Positions 13,705-32,900 are shown, counted from the stretch's first letter. The stretch: 64,000 nucleotides of DNA from Entomortierella parvispora E1425 (GCA_020891255.1 BQFW01000015.1:1488001-1552000), one strand, 5' to 3'. Notes: generated by a model from the letters alone, not told the origin. A program made the numbers and translations.

Positions 13705-14865
13705 TTAGTTCTTGAAGACCAAGTTCATCTTCATGCTGGAGGCAGCAGCTGCGGTAATAGGGAACTTGGAGGACTGGTCAAAACCAGTGAACACAAGCTT
13801 CAATCCCTCCTTGGCCGGGAAGTAAGTACTAAGAGAAACACCCGCATTCGCCTTGAGAACCACACTGCAGATGCTCACGCCCGGCACAATATTCAAATTG
13901 GTCACCGAAGCAATGCCCACGAGCACCGGTGTCACGTCAGAGGTCCACACTTGGAAATCAACATCCCCAAACAGGATCGTGATCGTGGAAGGGTTCGTGG
14001 CCGCAACCTTGAACTGGGCCGTGTCCACACCTCCGATGTTTGTCACGGCAGAGACTGAACTCAATGCACTCTGAAACTCTCCTCCAAAGTTATTGAGACC
14101 GCCCAAAGTGATAGGCAAAGAGATGCCAACGCCCGGAATCGAGATTGTCTTTGCTGGGACAGTCGGCATGAACGCTCCAAAGGGACCCGCGATCGACTTG
14201 GCGGCTGATGATGCAGAAATGGACAGGTCGACATCGACAGTGCCGCCGAGGGTAAAGGCATGAGAGACTTTGGTGGCAATACCCTCGAGGAAGGTCTTGA
14301 AGGCAGGAAACTGCTCAGCACCGACTGTCAACGTCGTAGCTGTCAGTTCCACGTCAAGGTTGTTGCCGGTCGTCTTTGCAGAGAGCCACGCCGAGGCAAA
14401 CGAGCCGGCGCTCTGGCCACCCTCCTAACAGATAAAAGTTCAACGAGAGAAGATCGCGTCAACATGATGTTCAGTGTTACTCTAAGATGGCCGTTCAAAC
14501 TGTTGTTGCTTACCAAGATCGACAACTGAGCGCATCAAGAGTTCACAAATGTCACGGGTAAAGGAGCATCGAGAGAAAGAGAGACAGAGAGAGAGGGGAG
14601 GAGAAGGAAGGAGAGGAAGAAGAGTAGAAACATGCGTAAGTACGTTGCCGACAAAACAGCATCAAAATGAAAAAGAAACGAAAAAAAAGTTACCGTCAAC
14701 TTGGCGCGGCGAACAGGAATGGAGGGAAGTCCAGCGGCAGTCAAAAGTTGGACGTCAACACCCGTCGATGCAATCGTGGGCACTGCACCACTGATGTCAA
14801 TTTTCAGGTCAGTCAACTTTGCGCCCTTCACCAATCCTACGTCGTGCTTCGATCGAAATGATGGT

Positions 14866-14898
<33 letters not shown>

Positions 14899-15239
14899 AC
14901 ACGCGTTAGTCTCCGTTGAGTCTCCAATGGCTGTCGCTGTGAAAGATTGCACAACTTCTTACAGCGAATTCCGATAGACAGGACGATGAAAGCATTGGGG
15001 CTGGAGAGACCGTCATTCTTGAGAACAAAAAGACATGTTAGTCATAAAGCGATGCGTATGAGAGGGAACAGAAACCGACGATATGAGTATACTTACTGAG
15101 CAAGGCAAGCCACTGCGCCTGCAGCAGAGGCCGCTGCATCCACAGCATCAGCAACGCGCTTGAGGAGAGTAGGGTGAGCATAGATGGTGGAGGCGATGGC
15201 GATGGCGCTCGCAAGGAGAACTGTGGTAGAGATTTTCAT
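13705..15239 (-). CDS. Secreted DUF3712/LEA_2-like protein, array copy 1 (divergent), ~360 aa
   Basis: Exons 15239-15097, 15017-14963, 14846-14694, 14525-14514 (12 nt) and 14424-13705, all GT-AG and in frame. Signal peptide MKISTTVLLASAIAIASTIYA, HPTLLKR, ITLGGLNNFGG, TNPSTITILFGDVDFQVW. Family name rests on motif resemblance only. Confidence 0.85.
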
Positions 15240-15781
15240 TGTCCAAGTTGTTGTATAAAGATTGGGGATTCGAATTGAGAACAAACGCGGATATCCAACT
15301 TTTATAAAGTCCACTGGCGGTGAAGGGATGGGCGGATCGGGCGATGAGCCACAGGGAAATAGCACAAGGAAGACGGGGCGATATCGGCCACTGGCCCCCT
15401 GAAATCGGCCGAGCTGTGCGATCCACACCATCAGGTATCGGTGTAGGTTACTATCAAAGGATCTAAGGGGAAGAACAGTGGAGGGGGTGCGACTTTCAGG
15501 TTCCCGTTGAGATGCAGGTGAGACCTACACCAAGGGGGTACAAGCAAACAGACAAAGAAGAAGGAGAGAGGGAGAGTGATTTGAACAATAGTGCCCTGAC
15601 ATGGATCAATAAGACTGACGGTTCGAAGCGGCTCAACCCACAGAACTGAGATGCGATCATCATACTCTCAAAGTTGAAGCGTGAGTTTGACTCTGTAGAC
15701 AATATGTAAACGCTGGCCCTGATATTTATTGAGAAACACACAACACATATAGAGGGATATAGCATCAGTGGTAGCGCTCTT

Positions 15782-17219
15782 CTACAGCACGAGGTCAAAC
15801 TTCACAGCTACGAGAACATCAGCAGCAATTGGGTGCTTGGATGAGCCCGCGAACCCTCTAACCGACAGCGTCAATCCAGTCTTGACAGGAAAGTATTTGT
15901 CAAGCTGACCAGCGGCATCGACCTTGACGATAACATCATACGTTTTTGTGCCGGGCCCCACGTTCATGTTTACCACTGACACGATGCCCACATACTCTGG
16001 CTGTGCGTCCTTGGACCAAAGCTGAAAGTCGACATTGCCCAACTCCACCAGGATATCGGTGGGACTGTTGACCACGATCTGACCTTGAATCAGGCGCTCG
16101 CCCGAGGCGCTTGTCTGGACGGCAGTGTCCAAGTGACCGTGAACGACCCCACCAAAGTTGTTAAACCCTTTCAACGTAATAGGAACAGTGATGCCCAAGC
16201 CAGTAATGGGAACCGGTTTTGACAAAATAGAACGAGCTTTGAGACCAAGAGACTTTGGAACCGCGTTGAGAGCATCATTGAAGGCGACGGAGAGGTCCAC
16301 ATCGGTTGTACCGGCGAGCACGATTGCGTGTGACTCGGTCGTAGCCAGGGCCGTCAGGAGGGCAATAAAGGCAGACGTCTGCTCTGTAGTAATGGTCAGA
16401 CGCGTGGCAGGGAGGACCATGTTGATCAAAAAGCCCTTGTGCGTAGTGGACAACCACACTGATTCAAACGATCCAGCATTGGATGAACCGTCCTAATATG
16501 AAAAAAGGGGGTGATTAAACGGCTTGGAAAGAAGCGAAGGGGTGCAAGGAACTGGGACAGGCTCTTTGTTTTTCAACATACCATGATAGTCAACTGAACT
16601 CAGCACGGCAGAGAGAGTAGACAGAAAGAGAGAGAGTAGAGGTATTTAGTACAGATACCACAGAACCACAAACATTGACTCTAAATGATCGGTCCATTTA
16701 CATCGAGCTTGGCACGACTGATAGGGAGCGAAGAAAGCCCAGTAAACGACACGACCTCGACCTTGATATCACTCGATGCGATCGATGGGAAGTCGCTTCC
16801 TAAGTCAAATTCCAGATTGGTCACCGTTGCGCCCTTGATCAAGCCGAGGTCATGCTGTGTTAGGAAGAAGGAAAGGTCTTGGTCAGCGTTTACTGCAGTC
16901 TTTTTTTTCTTTTGATTTATCATAAAGAACGGCCGCTTACGCCCAGCTTGGATTGGCAGTCAAATATGGCATTCCGACTCGAGTTCAGGGGATCCAACAA
17001 GATTCTATTGTAGCAGCCATCCAAGAAACGTAAATAACCACAAGGACAGGGAGGATTGGAGGCCAAAAAGATAGATAGAGAGAGAGTAGGTACTTACGGA
17101 GTAAAGCAGGCGATTGCCTCTGCCAAGTACTTCGCACGCTTGAAAAGGGCAGGACGGGCGTAGATGGTGGAGACGAGGACGGCGGTGCTCGCGATGAAGA
17201 TTGTTGTAGAGACTTTCAT
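15782..17219 (-). CDS. Secreted DUF3712/LEA_2-like protein, array copy 2 (type A)
   Basis: ATG 17219 (MKVSTTIFIASTAVLVSTIYARPALFKR), same 5-exon layout, microexon 16593-16582 (LTIM). Last exon has ITLKGFNNFGG...ELGNVDFQLWSKDAQPEYVG. Confidence 0.87.
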
Positions 17220-17773
17220 TGGATGTGTTGGCAGTGGGCTGTAGATTGACTTTTGGAGATTCAAAAAGGGAAGCAGAGGCGGACACCTGGACTTTTTATA
17301 AGGCGTAGTTAGGCAACAGCACAAGGTGTACTGGCGGCAATGGGTGTGGAAAACTAGGAGGGAACGGTACCAGGAAGACGAAGGAGACATAGATCTATTG
17401 CCCCTGATATCGTGCCGAATGGCAAGACTCCCATTGTCGGGCACCTGTATAGCTGACTTTGGTATGGTCTACAAGGTGGGGCGCTGTGGAAGTGAGGGGG
17501 AGCACGGCGGAACAGGGGGGTGGGGCAGGACTTTCAGGTTCTAGTAGGAACAGTTGAAGATGCTGAACGAGGACTTCACTCCTTACCATGACATGTTTTA
17601 CAGACACCGGCCAGGGAGAGCATGGACAGGGATAGAGGAGAGATGGAGGAGGAGTGAGCGCTTATGGTGTCCCACTGGATGGTCGAAAATGAAAACCACA
17701 AGGTGGCTTCATCCGCAGAATAGAAACGGAGACACGGTATTTATTAAGATATAATCCTTCCAGCGGCTCTCCT

Positions 17774-18552
17774 CTAGAATACGAGGTCAAACTGGACAGC
17801 TGCGACAACACCGGCAGCAATTGGGTTCTTGGACGAACCCGCAAACCCTTTAACCGTCAACGTCAATCCACTCTTGACAGGGAAGTATTGGTCGAGCTGA
17901 ACGGCAGCATCGACCGTGACAATGACATCATATGTCTTTGCGCCTGGCACCAGACTCAAACTGGCCACGGAGGCAATGCCCAGGTACACGGGCTGCGCGT
18001 CCTTGGTCCACAACTGAAAGTCAATATCGCCCAACGTCACCGAGATATCCGAAGGACTGGTGACTGTAACTTGGCCATGAATCGAGCGCACGCCCGTGGC
18101 ACTTGTTTGGAGGGTAGAGATGGAATCCAAGTGGCCCTGGGCAACTCCACCAAAGTTGTTGAAGCCCTTCAATGTAATAGGGGCGGTAATGGCCAAACCA
18201 GTAAGTGGAATCACCTTTGGTGCGGCAGCGGGAACCATGGCACCAACTGGGTTGGGAATCGCGTTGAGAGCACTAGCGATGGAGACGGATAGGTCCACAT
18301 CGGCCGTACCATCGAGCACGATTGTATGCGATGCTGTGGTGGCCAAAGCCGAGAGGAGGGCGATAAAGGCGGGTGTCTGCTCTGCAGTGATGGTCAGAGG
18401 TGTAACAGAGAGGCTCATGTCGAACGAAAAGCCCTTGGGCGTAGTGGCCAGCCACACCGAAGCGAACGATCCAGTGTTGGTGGTACCATCCTAATACAAA
18501 TAAGAAAAGGGTCAGAATAAACACTGAAAACGGTGCAAGGGAGTGGGACACG

Positions 18553-18583
<31 letters not shown>

Positions 18584-19277
18584 CGTTTGTTTTATCAATA
18601 TTACCATGATAGACACCTGAGCCCAGGTTTCGAGGAATGGATGAGAAACCGATAGCGATAGAAGAGAGAAAGAGGAGAGAGAGGAAAGAAAAGAGCGTTA
18701 TCGGTAAGTAGAGATGCCAACGATGAATACGACGAGCAGGCCCAACCAATCCCAATCGGTTTCTTTACGTTGAGTTTGGTACGGCTGACAGGGATCGAAG
18801 TAATCCCAGGAAACGACATGAGCTCGACACTGATATCATTCGTTGCGATCGTGGGAGACGCGCCTGTCAGGTCAAACTGCAGACTGGCCACCGTTGCGCC
18901 CTTGATCAAGCCGATGTCTTGCTGTTTTCGGAGAGGTAGAAAAAGAGAACTTCAACATCGAATCGGCTTCCTTTTTTTTTTATCAATCAAAGGACATGCT
19001 TCTTACAGTAAGCTTGGCCTGGCAGGCGGAAATAGCGCTCTGGGTTGCACTCGCGGGATTCAACAAGATGCTAACAGACATGCAAGAAATAGCTCGTCAA
19101 TAAACAGCAGGGAGAAGAGGATGGGAGGCTAATAAAATACATAGGAGGTTCTTACGGAGTAATACAGGCGACGGCATCTACAACATTTGCAGCACGCTTG
19201 AGAAGGATAGGATGGGCATAGATGCTCGAAGCGAGAACGACAGCACTCGCGATGAGGGTGGCGGTTGAGGCTTTCAT
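17774..19277 (-). CDS. Secreted DUF3712/LEA_2-like protein, array copy 3 (type B)
   Basis: ATG 19277 (MKASTATLIASAVVLASSIYAHPILLKR), microexon 18616-18605 (VSIM), last exon ends VQFDLVF-TAG. Confidence 0.87.
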
Positions 19278-19570
19278 TGTGTATGCGTGCTTGGCAATTG
19301 ACGATGAGTTTGAAGAAGAGAAACCAAGAAGTGAGGAAAACAAAGAAAAAAGGAGCTGGTACCAACCTGTCTTTTTAAAAAGGCGGGCCCTGAAAGGAAC
19401 GCAAGCTAGAAGAGGAAAATATCGAGATGCAAGGGGTGGAAGGAAGGGAGAGGGAAGGGAGAGCCCCAGAAACCATTATGGAAAGCAAGGGGTGGTGAAC
19501 TGTGCACAACTCGTCCAGGGATATGTTGCTCAACGCGACCTTCATTGCCCCCTTCGGTCTTTTGTTTTGG

Positions 19571-19575
<5 letters not shown>

Positions 19576-19615
<40 letters not shown>
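19576..19615. repeat. (TG)~20 microsatellite upstream of array copy 3
   Basis: Perfect TG run, absent from the paralogous region upstream of copy 5. Confidence 0.92.
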
Positions 19616-19618
<3 letters not shown>

Positions 19619-20455
19619 GGGGGGTATGTACTGCCAGGTCGGGACTCCTTGTGCAGAGATGGAGAAAACGGGGTGCAGATGTGGGTACAACACCCAAAGT
19701 GCATCAGAGACACCTGCATTGTTACATAGGCCCCTTGTTTTCCTCAAAGCCAGATGTGGAATTTGGCATCGGCGACAGCATCGGTGGCCAGTTGGTTGAC
19801 CGATGGACCCACGAATTGATCTGTTCCGAGAGTGCTTGCTGAGTTTTACGCAATGTCTTGTTGGCAGGGGAGGAAGAGCGGTTCGGCATTAGATCTCCCT
19901 ACAAGATTTCACTTCATGGTCCACTGATGAGAACCGAGTCGCAGCAAAAAAGTCAGGCACCAGAACATGACCGATGCGGTGGCACACGGTGTGGCAGGAC
20001 GCTAGCGTTAACACCGTCTGGTCCCCCTTTTTGGCAGGAAAATTCAGGAGGAGACAGGGAGCCGTTGTCAAGAGCCTGTGAATGAACCACAAGAAAACGC
20101 GTTAAGTGTCACAGCTGCAAGTTTCGTGTAGGCGGCCGTTACTGAAAGTGTGGCTAAGATTGTGTAGGTATAGCAATGTGTGGCGATGGGACAGTCGCTG
20201 GCTCAAGAAGACAACATTGAGAAACGCACACACAGAGAGAGACAGGAAGAGAGATTTGAGAGAAAGTGCTCTGACATGAATGACGGCTCGAGGTGACTCA
20301 ATCCGCAGAACTGGGATGCAGTTACCACATTCTCAAAGTTGAAGCATGGGGTTGACTCTGTGGATAGGATGTTCTTGTTGGAAACGCCGATCCGATGTTT
20401 ATTGAAATACATACAAACACTCATAGAGAGATAGAGCATTTGTAGCGGCCCTCCT

Positions 20456-21896
20456 CTAGAACACGATGTCAACCTTGACAGCAGCGACAACACCGGCAGC
20501 AATTGGGCGCTTGGATGAACCCGCGAATCCTTTAACCGACAGCGTCAATCCAGTCTTGACAGGGAAGTACTTGTCGAGCTGGACGGCAGCGTCGACCTTG
20601 ACAACAACATCGTACGTTCCTACGCCGGGTCCCAGGCTCATGTTTGCCACCGACAAAATGCCCACATACTCTGGCTGCGCATCCTTGGACCACAACTGAA
20701 AGTCAACAGCGCCCAACTCCACCAGGTCATCTGCGGGACTGGTGACGATGATCTGACCATGAATCAGGCGCTCACCAGAGGCGCTTGTCTGGACGGCAGA
20801 GGTAGTATCCAATTGACCGCGGATGACTCCACCAAGGTTGTTAAAACCTTTGATCTTGAGAGGAGTAGAGACACTCAAGCCATTAATTCGAACACCCTTG
20901 GACAAGAGAGAGCGAACCTTGAGACCTAGAGACTTTGGAAACGCGTCGAGAGCATCATTGATAAAGACAGTGAGGTCTACATCGACTGTACCGGAGAGAA
21001 CGATTGTATGAGACTCAGCTGTAGCCATAGTAGAGAGGAGGGCGATAAAGGCGGGTGTCTCCTCTGCAGTGATGGTGAAAGGCGTGGAAGGAAGGACTAT
21101 GTCGACCAAAAAGCCCTTGGGCGTAGTGGTCAACCACGCTGAAGAGAACGATGCAGTCTTGTGGGGACCATCCTAATATACCAAGAAAAAAAAACGGTGA
21201 GAAAAGATTGCTGGGGAAGACAAGGACATGGACATGGCACGATGCTCTTTAGCTCCATATATGTTACCAAGATAGCCAACTGAACCCAGGTCAGAAAAAA
21301 AATAGATGGAAAGAGTTGGGTGCCCGTTAGTGAGGATACTAGAGATGCAGAGGAACTTCAAAGGTCGACTCGAATGATCCGTCTGATTTACATTGAGCTT
21401 GACACGATTGACGGGAAACGAAGAAAGACCAGTAAACGACATGAGTTCGACAGTGATATCATTCGATGCAATTGTTGGATGCTCGCTTCTCAGGTCAAAC
21501 ACTATATTGGCCGCTGTTGCGCCCTTGGCCAAGCCAAAGTCGTTCTGTTTTCGGACGATAGAAAGATAGGGTGAACATTTTCTGCGGCGTCTTTTTCGGA
21601 GTATCAGGAAAGGGAACTGCTGCTTACACCGAGCTTGGATTGGCAGTCAGAAATAGCGCTCTGACTGAAACCAAAGGGATTCAATAAGATCCTAGAAGCC
21701 ATCCCAGAAAAGGTAAACAACGGCAAGCACAGGGAGGATTGGAGGTCAAGAAAAAAAAAAGAGGATGCACTTACGGAGTTAAACAGGCGACTGCCTCTAG
21801 AACATATTCCGCACGCTTGAGAAGGGCAGGACGGGCGTAAATAGTAGAGGCGAGGACGACAGCGCTCGCAATGAAAATGGCGGTGGAGACTTTCAT
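20456..21896 (-). CDS. Secreted DUF3712/LEA_2-like protein, array copy 4 (type A)
   Basis: ATG 21896 (MKVSTAIFIASAVVLASTIYARPALLKR), microexon 21279-21268 (LAIL). Shares the PKSLGLK..S.LSK loop with copy 2. Confidence 0.87.
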
Positions 21897-22552
21897 TCTA
21901 TGTGTGGCAGCGGGCTATGGAATGATAGTTGAAGATTCAAAAAGGGAAACAAAGATGGATACCGCAACTTTTTATAGGACGTAGTAAGGCTAGAAACAAG
22001 GTCCAATGCAGTAATAGGATGAGAGGGCTACGAGAGGATAGTATCAGGAAGATGAAGGAGGCATAGGACATTGACCCCCCCCCCCAAGATCGTGCCAAAT
22101 AGCCCTGATTCGCACTGTCATTCCAAGGGGAAGCAGAGGGGAAGAGGGCGAGTGCGGCGACTTTTAGGCTCTTGTGGAAACAGCCAATTGTGGTGAACGA
22201 GGACTTAACCCCTTCCCACGACATGGCAAAATGAGATACTGGTGGGGCCGACATCCAAGGGGTATATGGACAAGGACAGAGGAGAAATGGAGAGGGAGAC
22301 TGAGAGAGAGGGAGAGTGGGAAAGAGAGAAAGCTCTAGATTTAAATAATGGTATGCGAGGGCAAGACCAATACGAATACCACAAAGTGGCTTCATCCACA
22401 GAACCACGACGCGTTTACCATAGTCTCCAAATGTCGAAGCATGAACTGTCTACTGCTGTGAATGAGGAGTACTGGCTTCGATGCTGGTGCAATATTTATT
22501 GCGATACATACAACACACCTAAGAGATATATAGCATCGGTAGCGGCTCTCTT

Positions 22553-24044
22553 CTAGAACACAAGGTCGAATTGGAGACCTGCGACAGCTTTGGCAGAAAT
22601 TGGGTTCTTGGACGAACCCGCAAACCCATTAACCCTCAGCGTCCATCCCGCCTTGGCAGGGAAGTAATTGTCAATCTGAACGGCAGCATCGACCTTAAGA
22701 ATGGCATCATATGTTTTTGCGCCTGGCGCCAGGTTCATATTTGCTACCGAAGCAATGCCCATGTATACTGGCTGTGCATCCTTGGTCCACAGCTGAAAGT
22801 CAATATCGCCCATGGCCACCAGAAGATCCGAAGGACTGTTGATCGTAAACTGGCCATGAATCAAGCGCTCGCCCGTGGCACTTACTTGGGGGCTAGAGAT
22901 GGAATCCAAGTGGCCCTGAACAACTCCACCAAAGTTGTTGAAGCCCTTTAACGTAAGAGGAGTGCTGATGGCTAAACCAATCATTGGAATCACCTTCAGT
23001 GCGGTAGCGGGAACTATGCCACCAAATGGGCTGGTGATCGCGTTGAGAGCGCCAGCAACTGAGAATGTAATATCCGCATCAACCGTACCAACGAGCGTGA
23101 TTGAATGCGACGTTGTGGTGGTCAAAGCCGAGAGCAGGGCGACAAAGGCGGGTGTCTGCTCTGCAGTGATGGTCAGAGGTGTAACAGAGAGGCTCATGTC
23201 GAGCGAAAAGCCCTTGGATGTAGTGGCCAACCACGCCGAAGCGAACGAACCAACACTGGTGGTACCATCCTAATATGAAAATAATATATTAATAGTTGCA
23301 TGGGTTAAAAATGATACCGATCGTTGGCAAAAATGGGACACGCAGACTCTTTTTTTTCTGTTTTATCAATATTACCATGATAGACAACTGAACCCAGGTT
23401 TTGAGCCACGGCAGAGAAACCAATAGAAGAGAAAAAGGAGAGAGAGAGAGAGCAGCGGTATCGGTAAGTAGAGATGCCAAAGATGAATAAGACGAGTCAC
23501 GAGTTAGCCCAACCAATCCCAATCGGTTTCTTTACGTTGAGTTTGGTACGGCTGACAGGGATCGAAGTAATCCCAGGAAACGACATCAGGTCAACACTGA
23601 TGTCATTCGTTGCGATCTTGGGAGACGCGCCTGTCAGGTCAAACTGCAGGCTGGCCACCGTCGTGTCCTTGACCAAGCCCACGTCTTGCTGTTTTCAAAG
23701 AGGTAGAAAAAAAGAACGTCAACATCTGCTTTTTTTTTTTTTTGTCAATCCGAGGACCTGCTGCTTACAGCAAGTTTAGCCTGGCAGTCGGAAATAATTT
23801 TCTGATTCGCGCCCAAGGGATTCAACAAGATGCTATAATAACAGACATGCAAGAAATAGCTCGTCAATAAACAGCAGGGAGAAGAGGATGGGAGGCCAAT
23901 AAAATATATAGGGCGTTCTTACGGAACAAAACAGGCGAGGGCATCTGTAACAATTGTGGCACGCTTGAGAAGGATAGGATGGGCATAGATGCTTGAAGCG
24001 AGAACAACGGCACTCGCGATGAGAGTGGCGGTTGAGGCTTTCAT
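22553..24044 (-). CDS. Secreted DUF3712/LEA_2-like protein, array copy 5 (type B)
   Basis: ATG 24044 (MKASTATLIASAVVLASSIYAHPILLKR, identical to copy 3), microexon 23387-23376 (LSIM), ends LQFDLVF. Confidence 0.87.
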
Positions 24045-25025
24045 TGTGCAGGCGTGCTTGGCAGTTGACGATGAACTGAGGAAGAGAAATCGAGATGAGG
24101 GGAACAAAGAAGAAGAAAAAAAAGAGGTGGCACCAACCAGTCTTTTAAAAAGCTGGGCCTAGAAAGGAACGCAAGCTAGAAGGGGAAGAGGGAGGGGGGA
24201 AGGAGAGGAGAGCCCCAGAACCTATATTGGAAAGCAGGGTGAACTGCCAGGTCGGGGTCCCTGTTCAGAGATGGACAAAGGGGCGCAGATGTGGACATAA
24301 CGTCCAAAGCGCACGAAAGGCATCTGCGTCAAAGGCAACGCCACATAGCCCCCTTGTTTTCAAAGAGCCAGGTGGAATCAGGAACTGGCGTAACGGCAGC
24401 GCCGGTGGCAACCGGGTTGACCGTTAGACCCACGTAATGACCGTTCGCCACTGTCTACTCCATTTAGAACTGTTCGGAGAGCACTTGTTGATCCCTACGC
24501 TCTGCTCTGACGGACAGAGGCGGGCTGACATTGTTGGTAGAGGGGGAACCACAATTTGGGTCGGCTTAATCATTTTCCAGGGAGGAGGAACGGCTCGATG
24601 TCAGATTTCCTACAAGAGTTCACTAGCACGGTCGCGCGCCTTACTGAAAGTGTGGTTAAGCTTGTAGAGGAATTTCACCGTGTGGGCAACGTGGTACACA
24701 CCTGTCAGCTCAAGAAGACAACAGACAGAAAGAGTGGGGGCTGAGAGATCTTACAACTTGCTCTTGAGGTCTGTTGAGGCTGGTGTCCCCATCTGGGAGG
24801 GGCTATGGTGTGCCTGCACCCTGACCCTGAAGAGAGGGGCAAATTGCTACAAGACCTCCGAGCTTTTTCTGCCTTTTTTTTTTCAGGGGGAATGCTTGAG
24901 TGCCATTGTAAACCCGCTTCGATGAATAGAGTGGTAAGAACGTGGGTGTATTTAATGTGCAGATATGTAGATGGGTTCACAGATGACGATATTACGATGC
25001 AAAAGTAGAAAGCATCATCTCTCTC

Positions 25026-26434
25026 TCAGAATACAATATTGAACTTGAGATTAGCGATCGCACCGTCAGCGATAGGATTAGCGGAGGAACCCTTGAAGGC
25101 ACTGACCGCCAGTGTCAATCCGGCTTTGGCTGGGAAGAATTGGCCAAGCGTGGCTGCAGAGTTGGCCTTGAGGACAATCTGGACCTCACTGACTCCCGCC
25201 ACGATCTCAAACTTTGCAATGGTGGCAATGCCCAAGACCTCGGTCGTCGAACCTGGGACCCACACCTGCAAGGCCACATCGCCAATTTGAACAGTGAGCG
25301 TGCCTGGGTTATGGATCTGGACTTTGAAACTGACCGATCCTGCTTCGATCATCGTGACCGTGGCCAATTGACCGTTGACAACACCTCCAAGGTTGTTGAA
25401 GCACGACAGGGTGGCATCGGCCGAGACCGCCACACCAGGCACTTGGAGAGCCTTCAGAGAAGGAAGTACTCCAGCTATATTAACACCACCGACTTTGGGC
25501 AAAGGAAGAGAGAGCTCGATATCGACCAGTCCACGGAGGGTGATCGTGTGACTGGAAGTTGTGGTCAACGCGTCAAGAAGAGAGATGAAAGCCTGCGTCT
25601 GGTCGGGGGCAATGGTCAAGGCCGTGGTGTCAATGTTCAGCTCAAGGTCAAACCCCGCGACCTTCACATCAGTCCAAACAGTGACGAACGCACCAACTTC
25701 TGTGGGACCGTCCTATTGAGAGAGAAAAAGTGTTCGAGAACAGATAAGGAACTATTGATGCAATAAAGACAACCTGGACTCGGGATAACTCGACGTACCA
25801 AGATCGACAGCTATTGTAAAAGTGTAAAAGTCGGATGGAAGGAGGGAGGGAAAGAAAGAGAGAGGGAAGGAGTGTGTGTTTAGTTGGCGAGATCAACGCA
25901 CCGAGGCTGCACGACATTTGTAACAAAATACAATCGAAATAGAACGTACGCGGATCAGGAGGCGGCCGATGGGGATGGCTGGGAGACCTGGAATGGGTGC
26001 GCCCTTGAGAGCTACGTTGGCGGCAGAAATCGTTGGGACCGTGCCCTCCAGGTTAAGCGTCAAGGTTGGCAATGTAATCGATTTCAAGAGCCCGTTGTCA
26101 GTCTATCATAAAAAAATAGAAAAGTCAGCGTCGTTCTTGTAGATGCTGTTCATTGTTGCACATGGTCTAGATACATTCCGCTTACCGACAGTATGGATGT
26201 GCAGCTTGGTGCAAGGCTCAGCTTAGTTACAGTGCTGAAGAGATTGAAAATCAGCATGGGTTTGGCTCATGTCAACAAAGGTAGTGAACAAGATGGACAT
26301 GGGGTCACTTACTCAAAGAGGCATTTGAGCGCTGCGGTATTATCGACCACTCGTCTCAGAAGAGAAGGACGAGCATAGATGGTGGAGGCAAGAGCGACGG
26401 CACTCGCCATCATAATCACAGATGGAAACTTCAT
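25026..26434 (-). CDS. Secreted DUF3712/LEA_2-like protein, array copy 6 (divergent)
   Basis: ATG 26434 (MKFPSVIMMASAVALASTIYARPSLLRR), microexon 25810-25799 (LSIL). Last exon has TLSCFNNLGG...HNPGTLTVQIGDVALQVW...LKFNIVF. Confidence 0.85.
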
Positions 26435-26970
26435 TGTTGGTGTTGAAGGTGGGGAGAAACAGGCGATGGAGGTATGGTTCTGGTTGAGCAAAGGAAATGC
26501 CCCCTTGTTCTCTTTTATACATCTTTGCATCTACTCCAAGAACTTCGGTGGTTTATTTTTCACCAATCAAATGAGGGAGACTCCAGGCTTCTGCAGCTGC
26601 CTTTGCAGCGATGGAAGTACTTTCAATCCCTGATATCTCCCAACGTTGGGGTCGATCCCTTTCTTTTTGACAGCGCCAATTTAGAGAAAGTCGAGGAGGG
26701 GAGAGGGGCGGATTTTGGAGAGAGAGGGGCCAAAGACGGCGCTGCCGGCATATTTTAAGGGCTTGAGCAAGGGGGTAGGATGGCAAGAGGGACTCTCGAA
26801 CTTTGAGGCTGGCGCACGTTGATCTGACGCCATGAATCATGCACCTGTTTGCAATCTTGATGTACGCATGCTGCTACACCGGCAGGGAGATGTGGTTGGC
26901 AAGATCATGGATGAACGGTCTCAATGCAATGTTTATCGTGATGTATTGCCTCAAGTATTTAATGAGTGAA

Positions 26971-29900
26971 TTATACACTATGAGAGACTATGGAAACTGG
27001 AGAATCAGGGGTCAAAGGTGCCGATGTTCTTGTTACTGCTGCAGCTGTGGCTGCCTCGTAAAACTTGACCTTTGACAGGACTGTAGAGCCACAGTCATTC
27101 AAAGGGGAGGCCGGTGTCAAAAGTCCTGAAATTTCGGCCCTACTTCTCTTGACCACTGATGACTCAGAAGGAGGGCTAATTGAAATCGACAATGGCAAAG
27201 ATTTTCGATGTGCGAGCATCCTGTCTTTGGCGCCCATCGGACCTGTAGATTCTTTTTTTGAGGCTGCCGATGTCAATAATATAGGAAGCGATGAGGACGA
27301 AACTCTTGGCAAGGAAAAGGCAATTGAACTGGTTTGATACGACTGTGCCTCGGACTCGGTGACATCCAGAGATCCCTTTGGATAGTGAATATAGAGCAAC
27401 GGCCTAGAAAGTATTCATTTTGGAATGATTAGCAAGGCTGCATCGTTTTTCTCGAAGTTCAGTTTTGACGCACTTACATTTTTGCGCTCATAAACAAGCT
27501 CAGCATTCTCCCCCTCTGTTTGGCACCATCCCGATCTTTGGCAAGAACACCCTCAGCAACGACTGCAATCACATCCGGCACGAACTGGTGCGATTCAACA
27601 ATCCGATGAATCACAGATAGCACCATGTTCAGGTTTACGGTCGCATGAGGTACTCCATCGTTTCCAATGGCGACTTCGTGCGTCTGGACTATGCAAACTA
27701 TAGCTTGTTCAGCCTGGAAGACAATACTAAAAGTTGAAGATATAGAAGTAACCATTGTTAGATCAGCGCGTGTTGTTGGAGTCGAATTAAACCTGTAGGT
27801 TGTTTCTATACGTACCACCCGTTTTGCGCGATGCTAGGATGCGATTTCTCGATAGTTTCTTCCACATCTTGAGGGAAGTGTAGCAGTCCGTTGACCTCAA
27901 AGGTTTCTCCAATAGGTCCCAAAACAAACAGAAGACTGGTGGCCTGACCCTGGTTAAAATCAGGGCGACTATAATTCCAAAGAAATCCAACTTCGCCAGT
28001 CCGGGCATATGTTATATCGTCGCAGCTTTGGCTGCTGCCCACTATGTCGGATGTTTTTGTTGCAAGCTTGGCTTGATATCGACTTGTTCCAGTGGAATAT
28101 TGGCCATATACATCGTTGATGGTAGAAACAAAGGGGGACTCGCCGATGTAAGGCTGAACGTTCGCCTCCGATGAGACCCATATCTCACCAATTTCCTGTG
28201 AAAGACAAAGTACCCTTGATTCTGGATTGACAATGGCAATAGTTGTTCCACAGACAGGCTAAAAAATCACAAACGGTATATTGTTAGGGTACAATGACGG
28301 AAGTTGATAATACATAGAGATCGAGGCAACCACTTACTATGCCACTGTCCTCGACCCATATGCCTGCCACTTCAGTAGACTCTTCAGCGTCGTTCTCCAA
28401 CACCACGATTTTTCCTTGTCGAAGAGCCTCAAGAGAGAGATACAGACGAACGGGATCGATGCACATGTAGGCTCTGGTCGAAACCATTGGGTTAATCATA
28501 TGCGAAAACATGCCATTGACCGGACGCCTGTGATATCTCGTGTGCCCGACATTGCCTGAGGTTGGCCAAGCTGATGTTGGAGCTGCAGAGAAAAAGTGTC
28601 GTTCCAACATCTGATGGACCTTGACTTGGGACCGTTCAGACTTGACAGTGATCACTGTAAAATTCTCGACTGATGAAGTGTTGGAAGACCAAGAACCAGA
28701 CGATGGCAGTAAAACCCTTTCCAGCATGGTATAATCCAAAACGGCATCTCGAACTATACATCAAGAGCAGAGGTGTCATGTGTTAAAAGTGGACATTGCA
28801 GAGCGACAAACATTCGTGTTTCGGTCATGGCCATTCCCTTCTATACCTCCATGTCGCTCAAGTGTCTCAAAGTAAACCCTTGGAGCTTTCAAAAACTCTT
28901 CATAGTCGATCAAGGTTGTCGGTGCACCAGTGTAGACGCTCATGGTACAGGATTGCAAAAATCCGAGTCCAGAGAACGATTTCCAGCAAGCCACTAATGG
29001 ATCAATATTGTCTAGTCGAAGCTGAACCTTCTGCGCTTTGCTCTGAGCCAAAAGTGTCCCGTGAGTGGCCTTGACCAGGGTCCGCCTCCTGTCGGTAGAA
29101 TAGTGAGCGAACACCACGGCATCTTGAGAATGTGCAACACCTTGCGAAGTAGCCGAAGATGGGACCGCTCTGGGTAGGTCAATAAAGCCAGACTCTTTTC
29201 CAAGCGCCTTGTCCGAACCCACTATTGGTGCTTTGCTGACACTAAGAACCACGGGAACGACGGCATCCTGTCGAGCTCCAATGCAGGCTTTGATGTGAGC
29301 TAGGGTCGATCGCAGTTTGAAGAAGTTTTCTGTTGCACTTGACCCCAGCAAAGGCCGATGTGAGACCCGCAGCTCAGTTAGCAATCCGATCAGGTGGGCA
29401 ACGTCCTCGCGATGCACTCGCTCGCTATTGACTGCATCTCCAGACAGTTGAACCGGGACTGGAATGAGTCCAAGGAACCAACAGGCGTAAACAGTGGCTA
29501 CGAATTCGATGCCGTTTGGAAACAGGAGCACAACTTTGTCACCTGCCTGGAAAACACAATTCTTCTCCAGGAACGTTGCAATCCTGACGACGAGGATGCC
29601 CAGCTGTCTGAAGGTGACTGGCACAAAGTTACTGAAACCCTGTGGCGACGGCTGCTGTATTGACCTTTGGTTGGAAGTGCTGCTTGAATCGTCACTGCTG
29701 TTGTCGCCTTTGTGGGACTTGCTGCGGCCTTTAGAATTCTTCTTTTGTAGTGACCTCGACTTCTTGCTCAAGATTTTGCTCAGACTCTTTGATTCGGCCG
29801 GGAGACTCTTGGCGGCCGCTTGTCCCAATGTGGAAACCAGTGATGACTCTGCATGGCTGGAAACGAGATATGCAACATCTTCTGGGGTGACTAGGGATCG

Positions 29901-32900
29901 CCAAACTAGCATCTCTGCGAGATTCGTAAAATGAGCCAGGTCGACATGTCTCCTGCGATCAAAAATCTCTTTTGATGACTCGCACTTTGACCACTGAACC
30001 CTGAGTGTATGCGATGTGACAGCTGCTTGTCTAGCCGCCAAAGCATCTATAGTACGTAAGAACAGTCAGTTGCAAGATTTAACGGGTGTGAACTGTGCGG
30101 GAAAGTATATCCTTTAAGCATACGTACCATTGCCCCAAATGCCGCCCAGAGGATCATCACCGACTGCACAATGAAGCAGAGTCTTGTCAGCTGCAGTGTA
30201 AAGATGTATAAGCGGCAATCCGCCCTCTTCCAGAAGTTGCCGGCACAAAACTGTGTGGACTTGCTTGCTGTCCTTGCGGGCCCGCGGAAGCGATCCTGGA
30301 GCTGCCAAGGCTATGCAGTATGGGCGCAGTCCGTAATAATCGTGCAAAGCTTGAAGCACATATTCTGACAATCGGACCACATCCTTGGAACGATCGTCCT
30401 TTTTCTGTGGAAAATGGAAAGGAGTTTCGGCGCAAATGATTGGTAAATGTTGACCATTGATAGCCAACTCCAATACTACGCTGCGGTGGAGAGGAATGTA
30501 TATGGTTAGCACAGCGCATCTGCTTACGGTCAACTGTCTCGTTTTTAGCAGTGAACTCTTACCAAGCTGCAAACCCGACAATACGCTCCAAAATTGTATT
30601 GACGATATCCGTCTTGTAGTAGTAGTCGTACTCGATCAAGCCGGTTTTCCTTTGAATAATAGGGTGTTGGACTTCCTGCCGAATCCTTTCTGTGAGTGGT
30701 CCGAAGACAACCAATTGCCCTTCAATCAGGCATCCGAGGAGCCCAGTTCGTAAGAAGTCTTTCGCAGCCGCAACACCTCTCAGCTCAGTAGCTATCGCTC
30801 TCTCCGCTGGAAGTTGAGCCTGACAAGTTACCTTCGGGAGGCTATGTAGGGTCCAGAACTCAGATGCGTGAGATGTGGCGCTGATCCAGATTTCTCCTAC
30901 TTCGTCAATCTCGCACACCGCGGTAGTTTCGGGATCTACGACGGCAATTGTTGCTAAAACATATAAAGGAATGGACATTGAACAATTGGTCCACTTGGAC
31001 TAGACGCCCGCCACTATGACCAATATCAACGCTAATCACGTACCTTGGGTAGGCATTGGACCAGAAGACTCAACGAGAATAGCGCCTCTCTCTTGAGCGC
31101 GTGCGATTGCCTCCTTTGCCACGGCGATGACTCTAATCACGTTGCTTTTGAGTGCAGCCCGGTCGAGCAAAAAGTGATGAACCTGGCTACATCTTGATTG
31201 TTGCTTTTCCAAAGGAGGTGCCATAGAGCTCCCGTCCAACAAGCTTGGCTCCCTTATACTCAAGACAATACCTCCGTATTCCGGTAAAGTTGCCATAGGG
31301 GATACGACGCAGTCAAGAGTAGAGTTTGAGGGGCTCAGTAATAAATCTGACAAGACTTCCTGTTCGAATTGACGGTGGAGTTGAGGCTGGACGGTTGTTG
31401 TATCAACCAAGAATCTCCTCAACGTAAGTTCTGTTCGGCGCTCAGCTCTGTTGTTGTGACCCCGCCGCTGTTGGTCGCTGCTGCTGTCATGATCAATGTC
31501 TTTCACATTGCCACTCTGGCAATCGTCATTCCTGATATTACTGTCGCGCGGACTTTTGGAGCTGTCCGAACTACCTGTGCTTGGTCTCCTGCTGTTGTCG
31601 TCGGAGCTGGAAGACGAATCCATGGGCGATGCCGGTAACTGTGAGGCTCCTTGAATCAAATTCCTGATCCCTTCATAATCACCAATGGCGAGAGTTGCCC
31701 CGTACCGAGCAATGCATCGAGTCCAAAGCCCACGCCTGGCTGTCGCTCCAGCGTGAAGGAATACCGTGTGATGATCGTGAAAGAGGCCCATCCATGCACC
31801 CATGATCAAACCAGCTTGCTGCCGAGGTTCAAGCCAACTCAGAACAACAGCCCTCCTAAAGGGGCTCGAGTCCCTCCTATGGCTGGGAAAAGCCTCTCTG
31901 GAAGATGCAGTAAGCGTACGCCCAATAAACTGACATTGCTCAAGGACAACAGTATGGCTCATGGTCACTCCTTCCAGCTGCCCACTTGGAGCCTTGATGT
32001 ACTCGATATACGCCAGATCCGGAAGATCAGCTCCCGCCGAGACTGTGGCGTCTTTTGTCTTGTCGCTGTGAGGGTTGTTGTTGGCATCTTGCTTTGGCTT
32101 CCATCGGACCAGATTATCCGTTTTCCACCATGCGACACCGGAGGGCCAGTCCGCGGGTGGATGCTCCCTTTGAGAGGGTGATCCGATCTCGCCTCGTGTC
32201 CACTGCTCAACCTTTGTCCGAGTTGCATCACGCCTCAGCTGATGTAAAGCCGTTGCAAAGTTCTTGGTCAAGAAACAATAGTTGTGTTCGGTCGTCAATG
32301 CGAGTGTCGCTCCTGAATTGGCCAGGATAAATGTCACATCCGAGACTTTGGATATCTCATTGATGGGCACTGCAACCATGCCCGCCATCAGACAGCCAAA
32401 GAAGGCTGCTAGGAATTCTAGCAGCTCCGCTTTTCGGTAGATGAGCGCCACTCGGTCTCCTTGCTGAAGCTGGGACTTTGTCCTCAGCATCCAAGTGATC
32501 TTTTCGGCATTGTCGTAAACGCTCTCCCATGTCCAGGAACCGATTTCGTTGCCGCGGGAGTCGACGACGGTAAACGCTAGTTGTTTCGATGTTGGTGCTG
32601 TTGCTGTAGCTGCTGATGGTGTTGCCGTGTATGAATGTTGACGGCCAGCTCGGAAGCCAAGAATGTCGATCAAGTTCGTGTTCTTGACAACTGTCTCTGC
32701 ACCTAATTTGAACGTGGAAGATAAGGCGTTGCATTCACTTTAGTCTTTCTGGGAGGATACTTCGAGCTGAGAAGGGACAACGATTCTACTCCTATTAACT
32801 CTTACCTGCCGGTTGGTGGTGCTGAAGGTTTGGAGAGGGTGCATGCTCACCTCCTTGGTTATTGGGTGGCGACAAAGCTAGAGAACGCGTACCAAGGGGT

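Follow-up and report, generated by a model that had tools for sequence, protein, structure and literature searches.

What are the six genes that lie one after another on the minus strand, between positions 13705 and 26434, of a 64,000-nt genomic stretch from Entomortierella parvispora E1425, and do they make up a new system? This stretch, hereafter the window, is contig 15, 1488001-1552000, of a 38.9-Mb assembly that was described and annotated with AUGUSTUS in PMC8759367, where the RNA sequencing library DRA013164 is also mentioned. A preliminary description of the window had taken the six genes, here g1 to g6, for an undescribed system. We find instead that in the array a domain family already catalogued, though untested as to function, has undergone local, lineage-specific expansion: DUF3712 already has at least 69 domain hits in this genome, the subfamily occurs across the Mortierellaceae, five of the six genes are annotated, and the flanking open reading frames (ORFs) include no functionally linked neighbours. 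As to function, fold homology and composition lead us to propose that the products may be soluble secreted two-domain LEA-2 proteins that hold hydrophobic ligands, a reading that we consider evenly poised between right and wrong.

Family membership and predicted fold

In the Pfam search DUF3712 (PF12505) was the sole family match. The last exons score 17.5-34.7 bits against a gathering cut-off of 24.1, with g2, g3 and g5 above it (Table 1), and the match spans only about the last half of the 125-position profile (~65 positions, from position 55-62 to 125). Among the 38 aligned members of the wider subfamily, 36 match DUF3712 at E <= 0.01 (best 1.9e-12), and from the alignment the homology of the weakly scoring g1, g4 and g6 to the strong copies, at 36-77% identity, is not in doubt. 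An exhaustive phmmer search of 1.84 billion representatives returned 54 clusters (50% identity) at E <= 1e-3, of which 28 reach E <= 1e-10; the majority are 300-380 aa long and align from residue 1. The named members that we looked up are all hypothetical proteins of Mortierellaceae (Lunasporangiospora, Gamsiella, Mortierella, Linnemannia, Podila). We therefore assign the six genes, which have the look of expressed paralogues, as far as sequence comparison reaches, to a Mortierellaceae-specific subfamily within the DUF3712/Tag1-like branch of the LEA-2 superfamily. The motifs by which the preliminary description had made its DUF3712/LEA_2-like call (TLKGFNNFGG; SP.D..V.LG.VDFQLW; GIASV....PG) are all found in the alignment of the copies, and both Pfam and the predicted fold bear that call out.

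Searches and folding used single exons and the database proteins P0001-P0006, which lack four residues encoded by a very short exon discussed below; P0001 is g3 without those residues. AlphaFold2, run on P0001 with 38 homologues, gave a model with a predicted local distance difference test score (pLDDT) of 84.3 and a predicted template-modelling score (pTM) of 0.76. In this model residues 1-22 are disordered and helices at 23-44 and 51-60 precede two strand-rich domains, the first of which has one long helix (152-164); the linker at ~184-204 is less confident. Among ESM Atlas representatives the model superposes on DUF3712, LEA-2_4, LEA_2 and Tag1_C clusters from Mucoromycota and Ascomycota with template-modelling (TM) scores of 0.61-0.78 over 257-301 residues, the root-mean-square deviation (rmsd) being 2.6-3.8 for the superpositions at TM 0.67-0.78 (283-301 residues), and the Atlas's own model of an array protein gives the same LEA-2/DUF3712 outcome. 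The modelled protein thus shares the LEA-2 superfamily fold with recognised LEA-2, DUF3712 and Tag1-like predicted models. When domain 2 was folded alone, pLDDT fell to 74.8 and its first long strand was lost; since this strand is modelled with confidence in the full-length protein, the domains probably support one another there, as in the gapless LEA-2 rods of Levine.

In the literature searched, DUF3712 is treated in Levine (bioRxiv 10.1101/2021.03.12.435176) alone, and PF12505 does not occur. That work describes DUF3712 as an out-of-register LEA-2 repeat, reports a 27 x 6 x 7 Å hydrophobic groove with an unmodelled lipid-like ligand in the LEA-2 structure 3BUT, and predicts lipid transfer. 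The array proteins resemble other fungal DUF3712 proteins in their direct profile match, in a predicted two-domain shape (TM 0.78 to a Mucoromycota DUF3712 cluster) and in a distribution confined to fungi, but they are short (~350 aa), with a putative signal peptide and an N-terminal, cysteine-bearing helical hairpin. Most of the DUF3712 hits elsewhere in the genome fall in ORFs of ~450-1500 aa, often paired and many of them multi-repeat. The large multi-repeat ORFs (~950-1500 aa) are paired or clustered on contigs C3, C8, C9, C11 and C13, for example at C8:2437473-2447140 and C13:1792651-1803274; some have in-frame stops, and the pair on C13 has the appearance of a 7-kb duplication whose copies are nearly identical.

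Yeast Tag1, which is vacuolar and acts in the termination of autophagy, and Tag1-like proteins belong to the same DUF3712 branch and have tandem LEA-2-like beta-sandwiches (Tag1-like clusters, TM 0.61-0.72). However, Tag1 sits in the membrane in type II orientation and consists of a cytosolic tail, a single transmembrane helix and three LEA-2 domains, whereas the array proteins have two domains and no anchor, and Tag1_C (PF22786) gave no match at E <= 5 in P0001-P0004. Canonical LEA-2 proteins (Arabidopsis LEA14, 1XO8; archaeal Af_0446, 3BUT; human TMEM106B, 8B7D) share the beta-sandwich of about seven strands, and all rank high in two exhaustive VIA-align searches of 48,161 solved chains. In one of these the luminal domain of TMEM106B reaches Z 5.0 (rank 12); in the other, 3BUT reaches Z 4.8 (rank 4) and 1XO8 comes in with Z 4.2 (rank 16). 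An archaeal LEA_2 cluster reaches TM 0.52 (target-normalised) to the P0001 model. These solved proteins are cytosolic, archaeal or of the lysosomal membrane, in contrast to the array proteins, which are predicted to be secreted by a fungus.

Gene structure and the 12-nt exon

The six co-oriented paralogues are bounded exactly by the g1 stop codon and the g6 ATG. Before splicing they show as six long C-terminal ORFs (213-227 aa), and in front of every one stands a short frame that opens with MK and a hydrophobic run. We placed the splice sites by aligning the six genomic copies, in which conserved islands are set off from diverged stretches starting with GTA and ending with AG. Since splicing at these sites yields six open frames, the coordinates and the five exons per gene given in the preliminary description are right, as is its statement that no copy appears pseudogenised: all 24 introns (78-168 nt) are GT..AG, and the spliced frames, of 340 to 360 aa (Table 1), contain no in-frame stop. 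It had further given every gene its own TATA-like box; TATAAAA does lie 67-85 nt 5' of the ATG in g1, g2, g4 and g6, whereas g3 and g5 carry the variant TTTTTAAAA in its place. A scan for bacterial promoters and terminators gave hits at chance level and is not relevant to fungal DNA.

Exon 4 measures 12 nt in all six copies; in each it is bordered by AG and by GTA, and its four residues are a hydrophobic x-x-I-x peptide. It recurs in two further paralogues on the same contig: L005 (contig 15:1587465-1588178, plus strand), which lies 35 kb past the window and is 59% identical to the last exon of g3, and L007 (contig 15:1711070-1711756, minus strand), which lies 159 kb past it and is 40% identical. 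A metagenomic g1 orthologue, L014, has it too, making nine copies in total. In homologues from other genera, four residues (V-T-I-V, V-T-L-E and similar) stand precisely at this spot, and in two genes of a sister clade the same 12 nt begin the last exon, so that exon sizes are 122/49/153/729 there against 122/64/153/12/717 here. Given its presence in the six copies, L005, L007 and L014, and the four residues in the other-genus homologues, we judge from the comparison that the micro-exon is real and that the public gene models are wrong at this locus.

When the last exon of g3 served as query in a word search, four database proteins were retrieved, EMPS_11133-11136, each named 'hypothetical protein' and 64-100% identical over the exon, and the annotation at NCBI extends to g2-g6 as hypothetical proteins EMPS_11133-11137. 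These models skip the micro-exon and are therefore 4 aa shorter; that of g4, EMPS_11135, also uses a later acceptor for exon 2, by which a further 9 aa are lost (approx. 21664-21690). On this comparison, the Entomortierella copies possess intron 4, and both sister-clade genes examined lack it. The public models need correction, which is advisable ahead of any protein expression. Translation, identities and the ratio of replacement to silent substitution rates (dN/dS) reported here are based on spliced coding sequences that include the micro-exon.

Three low-complexity tracts fall within the array: a perfect (TG)20 microsatellite (19576-19615) inside the 1178-bp spacer between g4 and g3 and, on the plus strand, A30 at 14867-14896 in intron 2 of g1 and T26 at 18558-18583 in intron 4 of g3.

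Table 1. Coordinates of the array genes and associated features (positions in the window; for the sister-clade arrays, positions on the sequences named)
Feature	Position	Strand	Exons or flanks	Remarks
g1	13705..15239	-	15097-15239, 14963-15017, 14694-14846, 14514-14525, 13705-14424	360 aa; DUF3712 22.1 bits (last exon)
g2 (EMPS_11133)	15782..17219	-	17098-17219, 16941-17004, 16702-16854, 16582-16593, 15782-16492	353 aa; DUF3712 30.1 bits
g3 (EMPS_11134)	17774..19277	-	19156-19277, 19007-19070, 18769-18921, 18605-18616, 17774-18490	355 aa; DUF3712 34.7 bits
g4 (EMPS_11135)	20456..21896	-	21775-21896, 21628-21691, 21392-21544, 21268-21279, 20456-21172	355 aa; DUF3712 17.5 bits, below cut-off
g5 (EMPS_11136)	22553..24044	-	23923-24044, 23769-23832, 23536-23688, 23376-23387, 22553-23269	355 aa; DUF3712 30.3 bits
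g6 (EMPS_11137)	25026..26434	-	26313-26434, 26186-26234, 25950-26102, 25799-25810, 25026-25712	340 aa; DUF3712 21.6 bits
Micro-exon (exon 4) of g3	18605..18616	-	AG/GTA	V-S-I-M
Micro-exons of the other copies	14514-14525, 16582-16593, 21268-21279, 23376-23387, 25799-25810	-		
TATAAAAA box of g2	17293-17300	-		81 nt upstream of ATG
Boxes equivalent to TATAAAAA of g2	15299-15306 (g1), 21969-21976 (g4), 26512-26519 (g6)	-		
Cassette copy 1 (g2, g3 and flanks)	15613..19490	-		genic and intergenic direct repeats, 4.63-4.77 kb spacing (families D7, D11-D15)
Cassette copy 2 (g4, g5 and flanks)	20278..24239	-		same direct repeats; identities; tree
Sister-clade array L015	8001-15265			
Sister-clade array L016	8001-15125			
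Sister-clade array L017	1359-4351			

Duplication, selection and arrays in other genera

The inner four genes are 57-77% identical to one another, the closest pairs being g3/g5 (77%) and g2/g4 (70%), whereas g1 and g6 share 36-47% with all other copies; the preliminary description had rightly set strongly diverged outer copies against inner ones. Because direct repeats, both genic and intergenic, recur at the spacing given in Table 1, we conclude from the repeat pattern that the array grew by tandem duplication, including that of the two-gene unit g2-g3 to g4-g5. In the maximum-likelihood tree g2 and g4 are paired (100/98), and one fork of the inner clade, left unresolved by the tree, holds both g3 and g5. 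All eight E. parvispora copies fall in one clade (100/100) with four further sequences and a Lunasporangiospora protein; one of these four, P0005, comes from a metagenome contig and is a g1 orthologue (64% identity). P0005 pairs with g1 and P0007 with L007, and since neither partner is a copy from the E. parvispora genome (L007 and P0007 are separate tips), the lineages of g1 and L007 appear, on this tree, to be older than speciation. The inner four group with L005 in a young clade that no sequence from outside joins.

Two observations concern individual copies. From exon 1 to a point 120 nt into exon 5, and counting the introns, g3 and g5 show ~89-95% nucleotide identity, with exon 2 an outlier at 77%; the remainder of exon 5 shows 81-87% and the downstream sequence 69%. 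The high-identity stretch may be a gene-conversion tract combined with a fast-changing hairpin loop. The metagenomic g1 orthologue L014 (JGI 3300029943, a 2.6-kb contig) has one base missing in its signal-peptide codons (476-560) relative to all copies in the array, owing either to a fault in the assembly or to its being a broken copy.

Selection on the copies, which are maintained, is purifying but relaxed, as Nei-Gojobori dN/dS over exons 3 and 5 is 0.29-0.48 in all 15 pairs. That they are silent or decaying duplicates with no function is hardly credible: the six frames and the 24 pairs of splice sites are intact although dS reaches saturation, dN/dS lies well under 1, and the micro-exon is conserved in nine copies.

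The same values bear on the stronger proposal of the preliminary description, that these are membrane-active effectors of defence or host interaction, diversified and kept variable by positive selection. Several observations are in keeping with it: the tandem copies are only 36-77% identical, variability peaks at the N-terminal hairpin-tip loop and the inter-domain linker, helix 29-44 of the mature protein differs between g3 and g5 by 8 replacement changes and 1 silent change, and the fungus is host to endobacteria and is exposed to nematodes (PMC8759367). However, the selection for variety that the proposal calls for is not borne out, as dN/dS is low over the gene as a whole, sliding windows above 1 are small and not significant, a comparison of the hairpin-tip loop with the rest gives Fisher p = 1, and the excess in helix 29-44 is not significant either. 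Moreover, no toxin or pore-former fold was found among the best-ranked rows of the structure searches, two by Foldseek and two by VIA-align, an absence that is not proof but leaves the claim of membrane activity without a structural counterpart there, and the 1:1 relatives of g1 and L007 in other organisms indicate that old copies have been stably kept rather than turned over. We consider the effector proposal quite improbable.

Co-oriented arrays also occur in the sister clade, with three genes apiece in a pair of Mortierella sp. assemblies and with two genes in Gamsiella multidivaricata; tandem arrays are therefore a habit of the family, not peculiar to this window. The sister-clade array genes have four exons, without intron 4, and each array adjoins a BCDHK-type kinase and a Ser/Thr kinase in conserved synteny. 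No close copy of the sister clade was found in the E. parvispora genome. Around the array in the window, the flanking ORFs are of Kelch, L7Ae and RRM type, together with two of AMP-binding (acyl-activating) type. The latter are adjacent to each other (28776-30041 and 31036-32673, minus strand) just upstream of the array, and no link between them and the array was found.

Processing, location and a possible hydrophobic ligand

In every copy the N-terminus consists of MK, 15-17 hydrophobic residues ending ..IYA, and then x-P-x-L-L/F-(K/R)-R, so that the signal-like segment noted in the preliminary description is seen in all six. Of the 22 full-length homologues, 20 keep the dibasic pair, and conservation across the family extends to two cysteines, which in g3 are residues 38 and 57. 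Over the first 28 codons (signal and propeptide), g3 and g5 differ by 0 replacement and 4 silent changes. At its propeptide site, L005 has N-R rather than K-R. The sequence gives no sign of the type II topology of Tag1 (YLR173W), as just MK precedes the hydrophobic run, which is followed by A-x-P and the dibasic site. The mature proteins are acidic and unusually hydrophobic, with isoelectric points of 4.7-5.5, grand average of hydropathicity (GRAVY) values of +0.37 to +0.67, few charged residues and at most one N-glycosylation sequon; their top 19-residue Kyte-Doolittle windows average a borderline 1.46-1.75, with no clear membrane-spanning segment. At the C-terminus of the copies, the sequence shows no hydrophobic tail and no glycosylphosphatidylinositol (GPI) or wall-anchor signal. 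The positions that are invariant across the family are mostly glycines, and the alignments reveal no catalytic-looking set of residues. Together these features point to a soluble, non-enzymatic protein of the secretory pathway that would be cut by signal peptidase and kexin.

We propose the following course of events. First, the signal peptide would be cleaved, and a propeptide of 6-8 residues ending K/R-R would be removed by kexin in the late Golgi. The mature chain would then begin with a two-helix hairpin, in which the two conserved cysteines probably form a disulfide staple, and continue into a pair of LEA-2-like beta-sandwich domains, connected by one long strand common to both. The soluble protein would most likely be released outside the hypha. 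Finally, the groove or cavity predicted for LEA-2 domains would hold or shuttle extended hydrophobic molecules such as fatty acids, lysolipids or similar; lipid binding is a reasonable expectation from the LEA-2 literature, and the high GRAVY values and hydrophobic make-up of the array proteins would suit a groove or cavity chain between strands 1 and 7.

Several points weigh against this proposal. Cleavage of the signal peptide is read off sequence features alone, and that LEA-2 domains bind lipids is predicted, not established. Individually, g1, g4 and g6 fall under the Pfam cut-off. The matches to solved LEA-2 chains, at an rmsd of 4.5-5.7 Å, are weak (Z 4.2-5.0) and not clear of generic beta-sandwiches (best Z 6.0-6.1). 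Foldseek searches of the PDB returned only generic Ig-like and cupredoxin rows, namely tandem Ig-like proteins at TM < 0.25 for the whole model and azurin and glycosidase sandwiches at E > 0.001 for domain 2 alone. A sequence-profile search of the PDB found no solved relative, and no solved chain was matched by sequence.

The same composition would also suit a coat of the hyphal surface or cell wall, in which hydrophobic, acidic beta-sandwich proteins self-associate at the wall or the air-water interface in the manner of hydrophobins and carry no specific lipid cargo. To our knowledge, this lineage has no hydrophobins. The hydropathy of the mature proteins, their few charges, the putative signal peptide and the cysteine pair are all compatible with such a coat; secreted proteins that are abundant and structural are typically encoded in tandem arrays of many copies, the dependence of the first strand of domain 2 on domain 1 suggests rod-like stacking, and giant multi-repeat DUF3712 ORFs exist elsewhere in the genome. 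However, the C-terminus has no repeat, GPI or wall-anchoring signal, and the literature ties this fold family to lipid handling rather than to coats. We therefore regard a coat as unlikely, if worth keeping in view.

A different destination is conceivable as well. Eukaryotic LEA-2/DUF3712 relatives of known location occupy the lumens of vacuoles and lysosomes, and a signal peptide with a kexin site suits vacuolar routing as well as secretion; the array proteins could thus reside, in soluble form, in the lumen of the vacuole or endosome and, like Tag1, Vac7 and TMEM106B but without their anchor, act on lipids in a degradative compartment. Yet all described lumenal members have a membrane anchor, which the array proteins do not, their N-terminal architecture is like that of ordinary fungal secreted proteins, and no recognisable vacuolar sorting motif was identified, without a proper test for one. 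A lumenal location seems to us rather improbable.

To return to secreted proteins with a hydrophobic ligand, the boldest form of that proposal is that the array encodes the LEA-2 superfamily's first soluble extracellular members, and that these are Mortierellaceae-specific secreted lipid shuttles whose diversified copies each move a hydrophobic cargo of their own between the hypha and the environment or partners around it. We see this as a long shot. If true, the shuttles would be diversified at the variable hairpin tip and linker, and their cargoes might include soil lipids and molecules exchanged with bacteria or nematodes. The Mortierellaceae are lipid-rich, abundant in soil and home to endobacteria. 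A family of secreted proteins whose fold is predicted to hold lipids, and which has expanded in tandem arrays in a number of their genera, would offer a reasonable handle on how these fungi take up or export hydrophobic molecules. Furthermore, as soluble proteins that should be easily purified, the array products would provide a test case for the hypothesis that LEA-2 domains transfer lipids.

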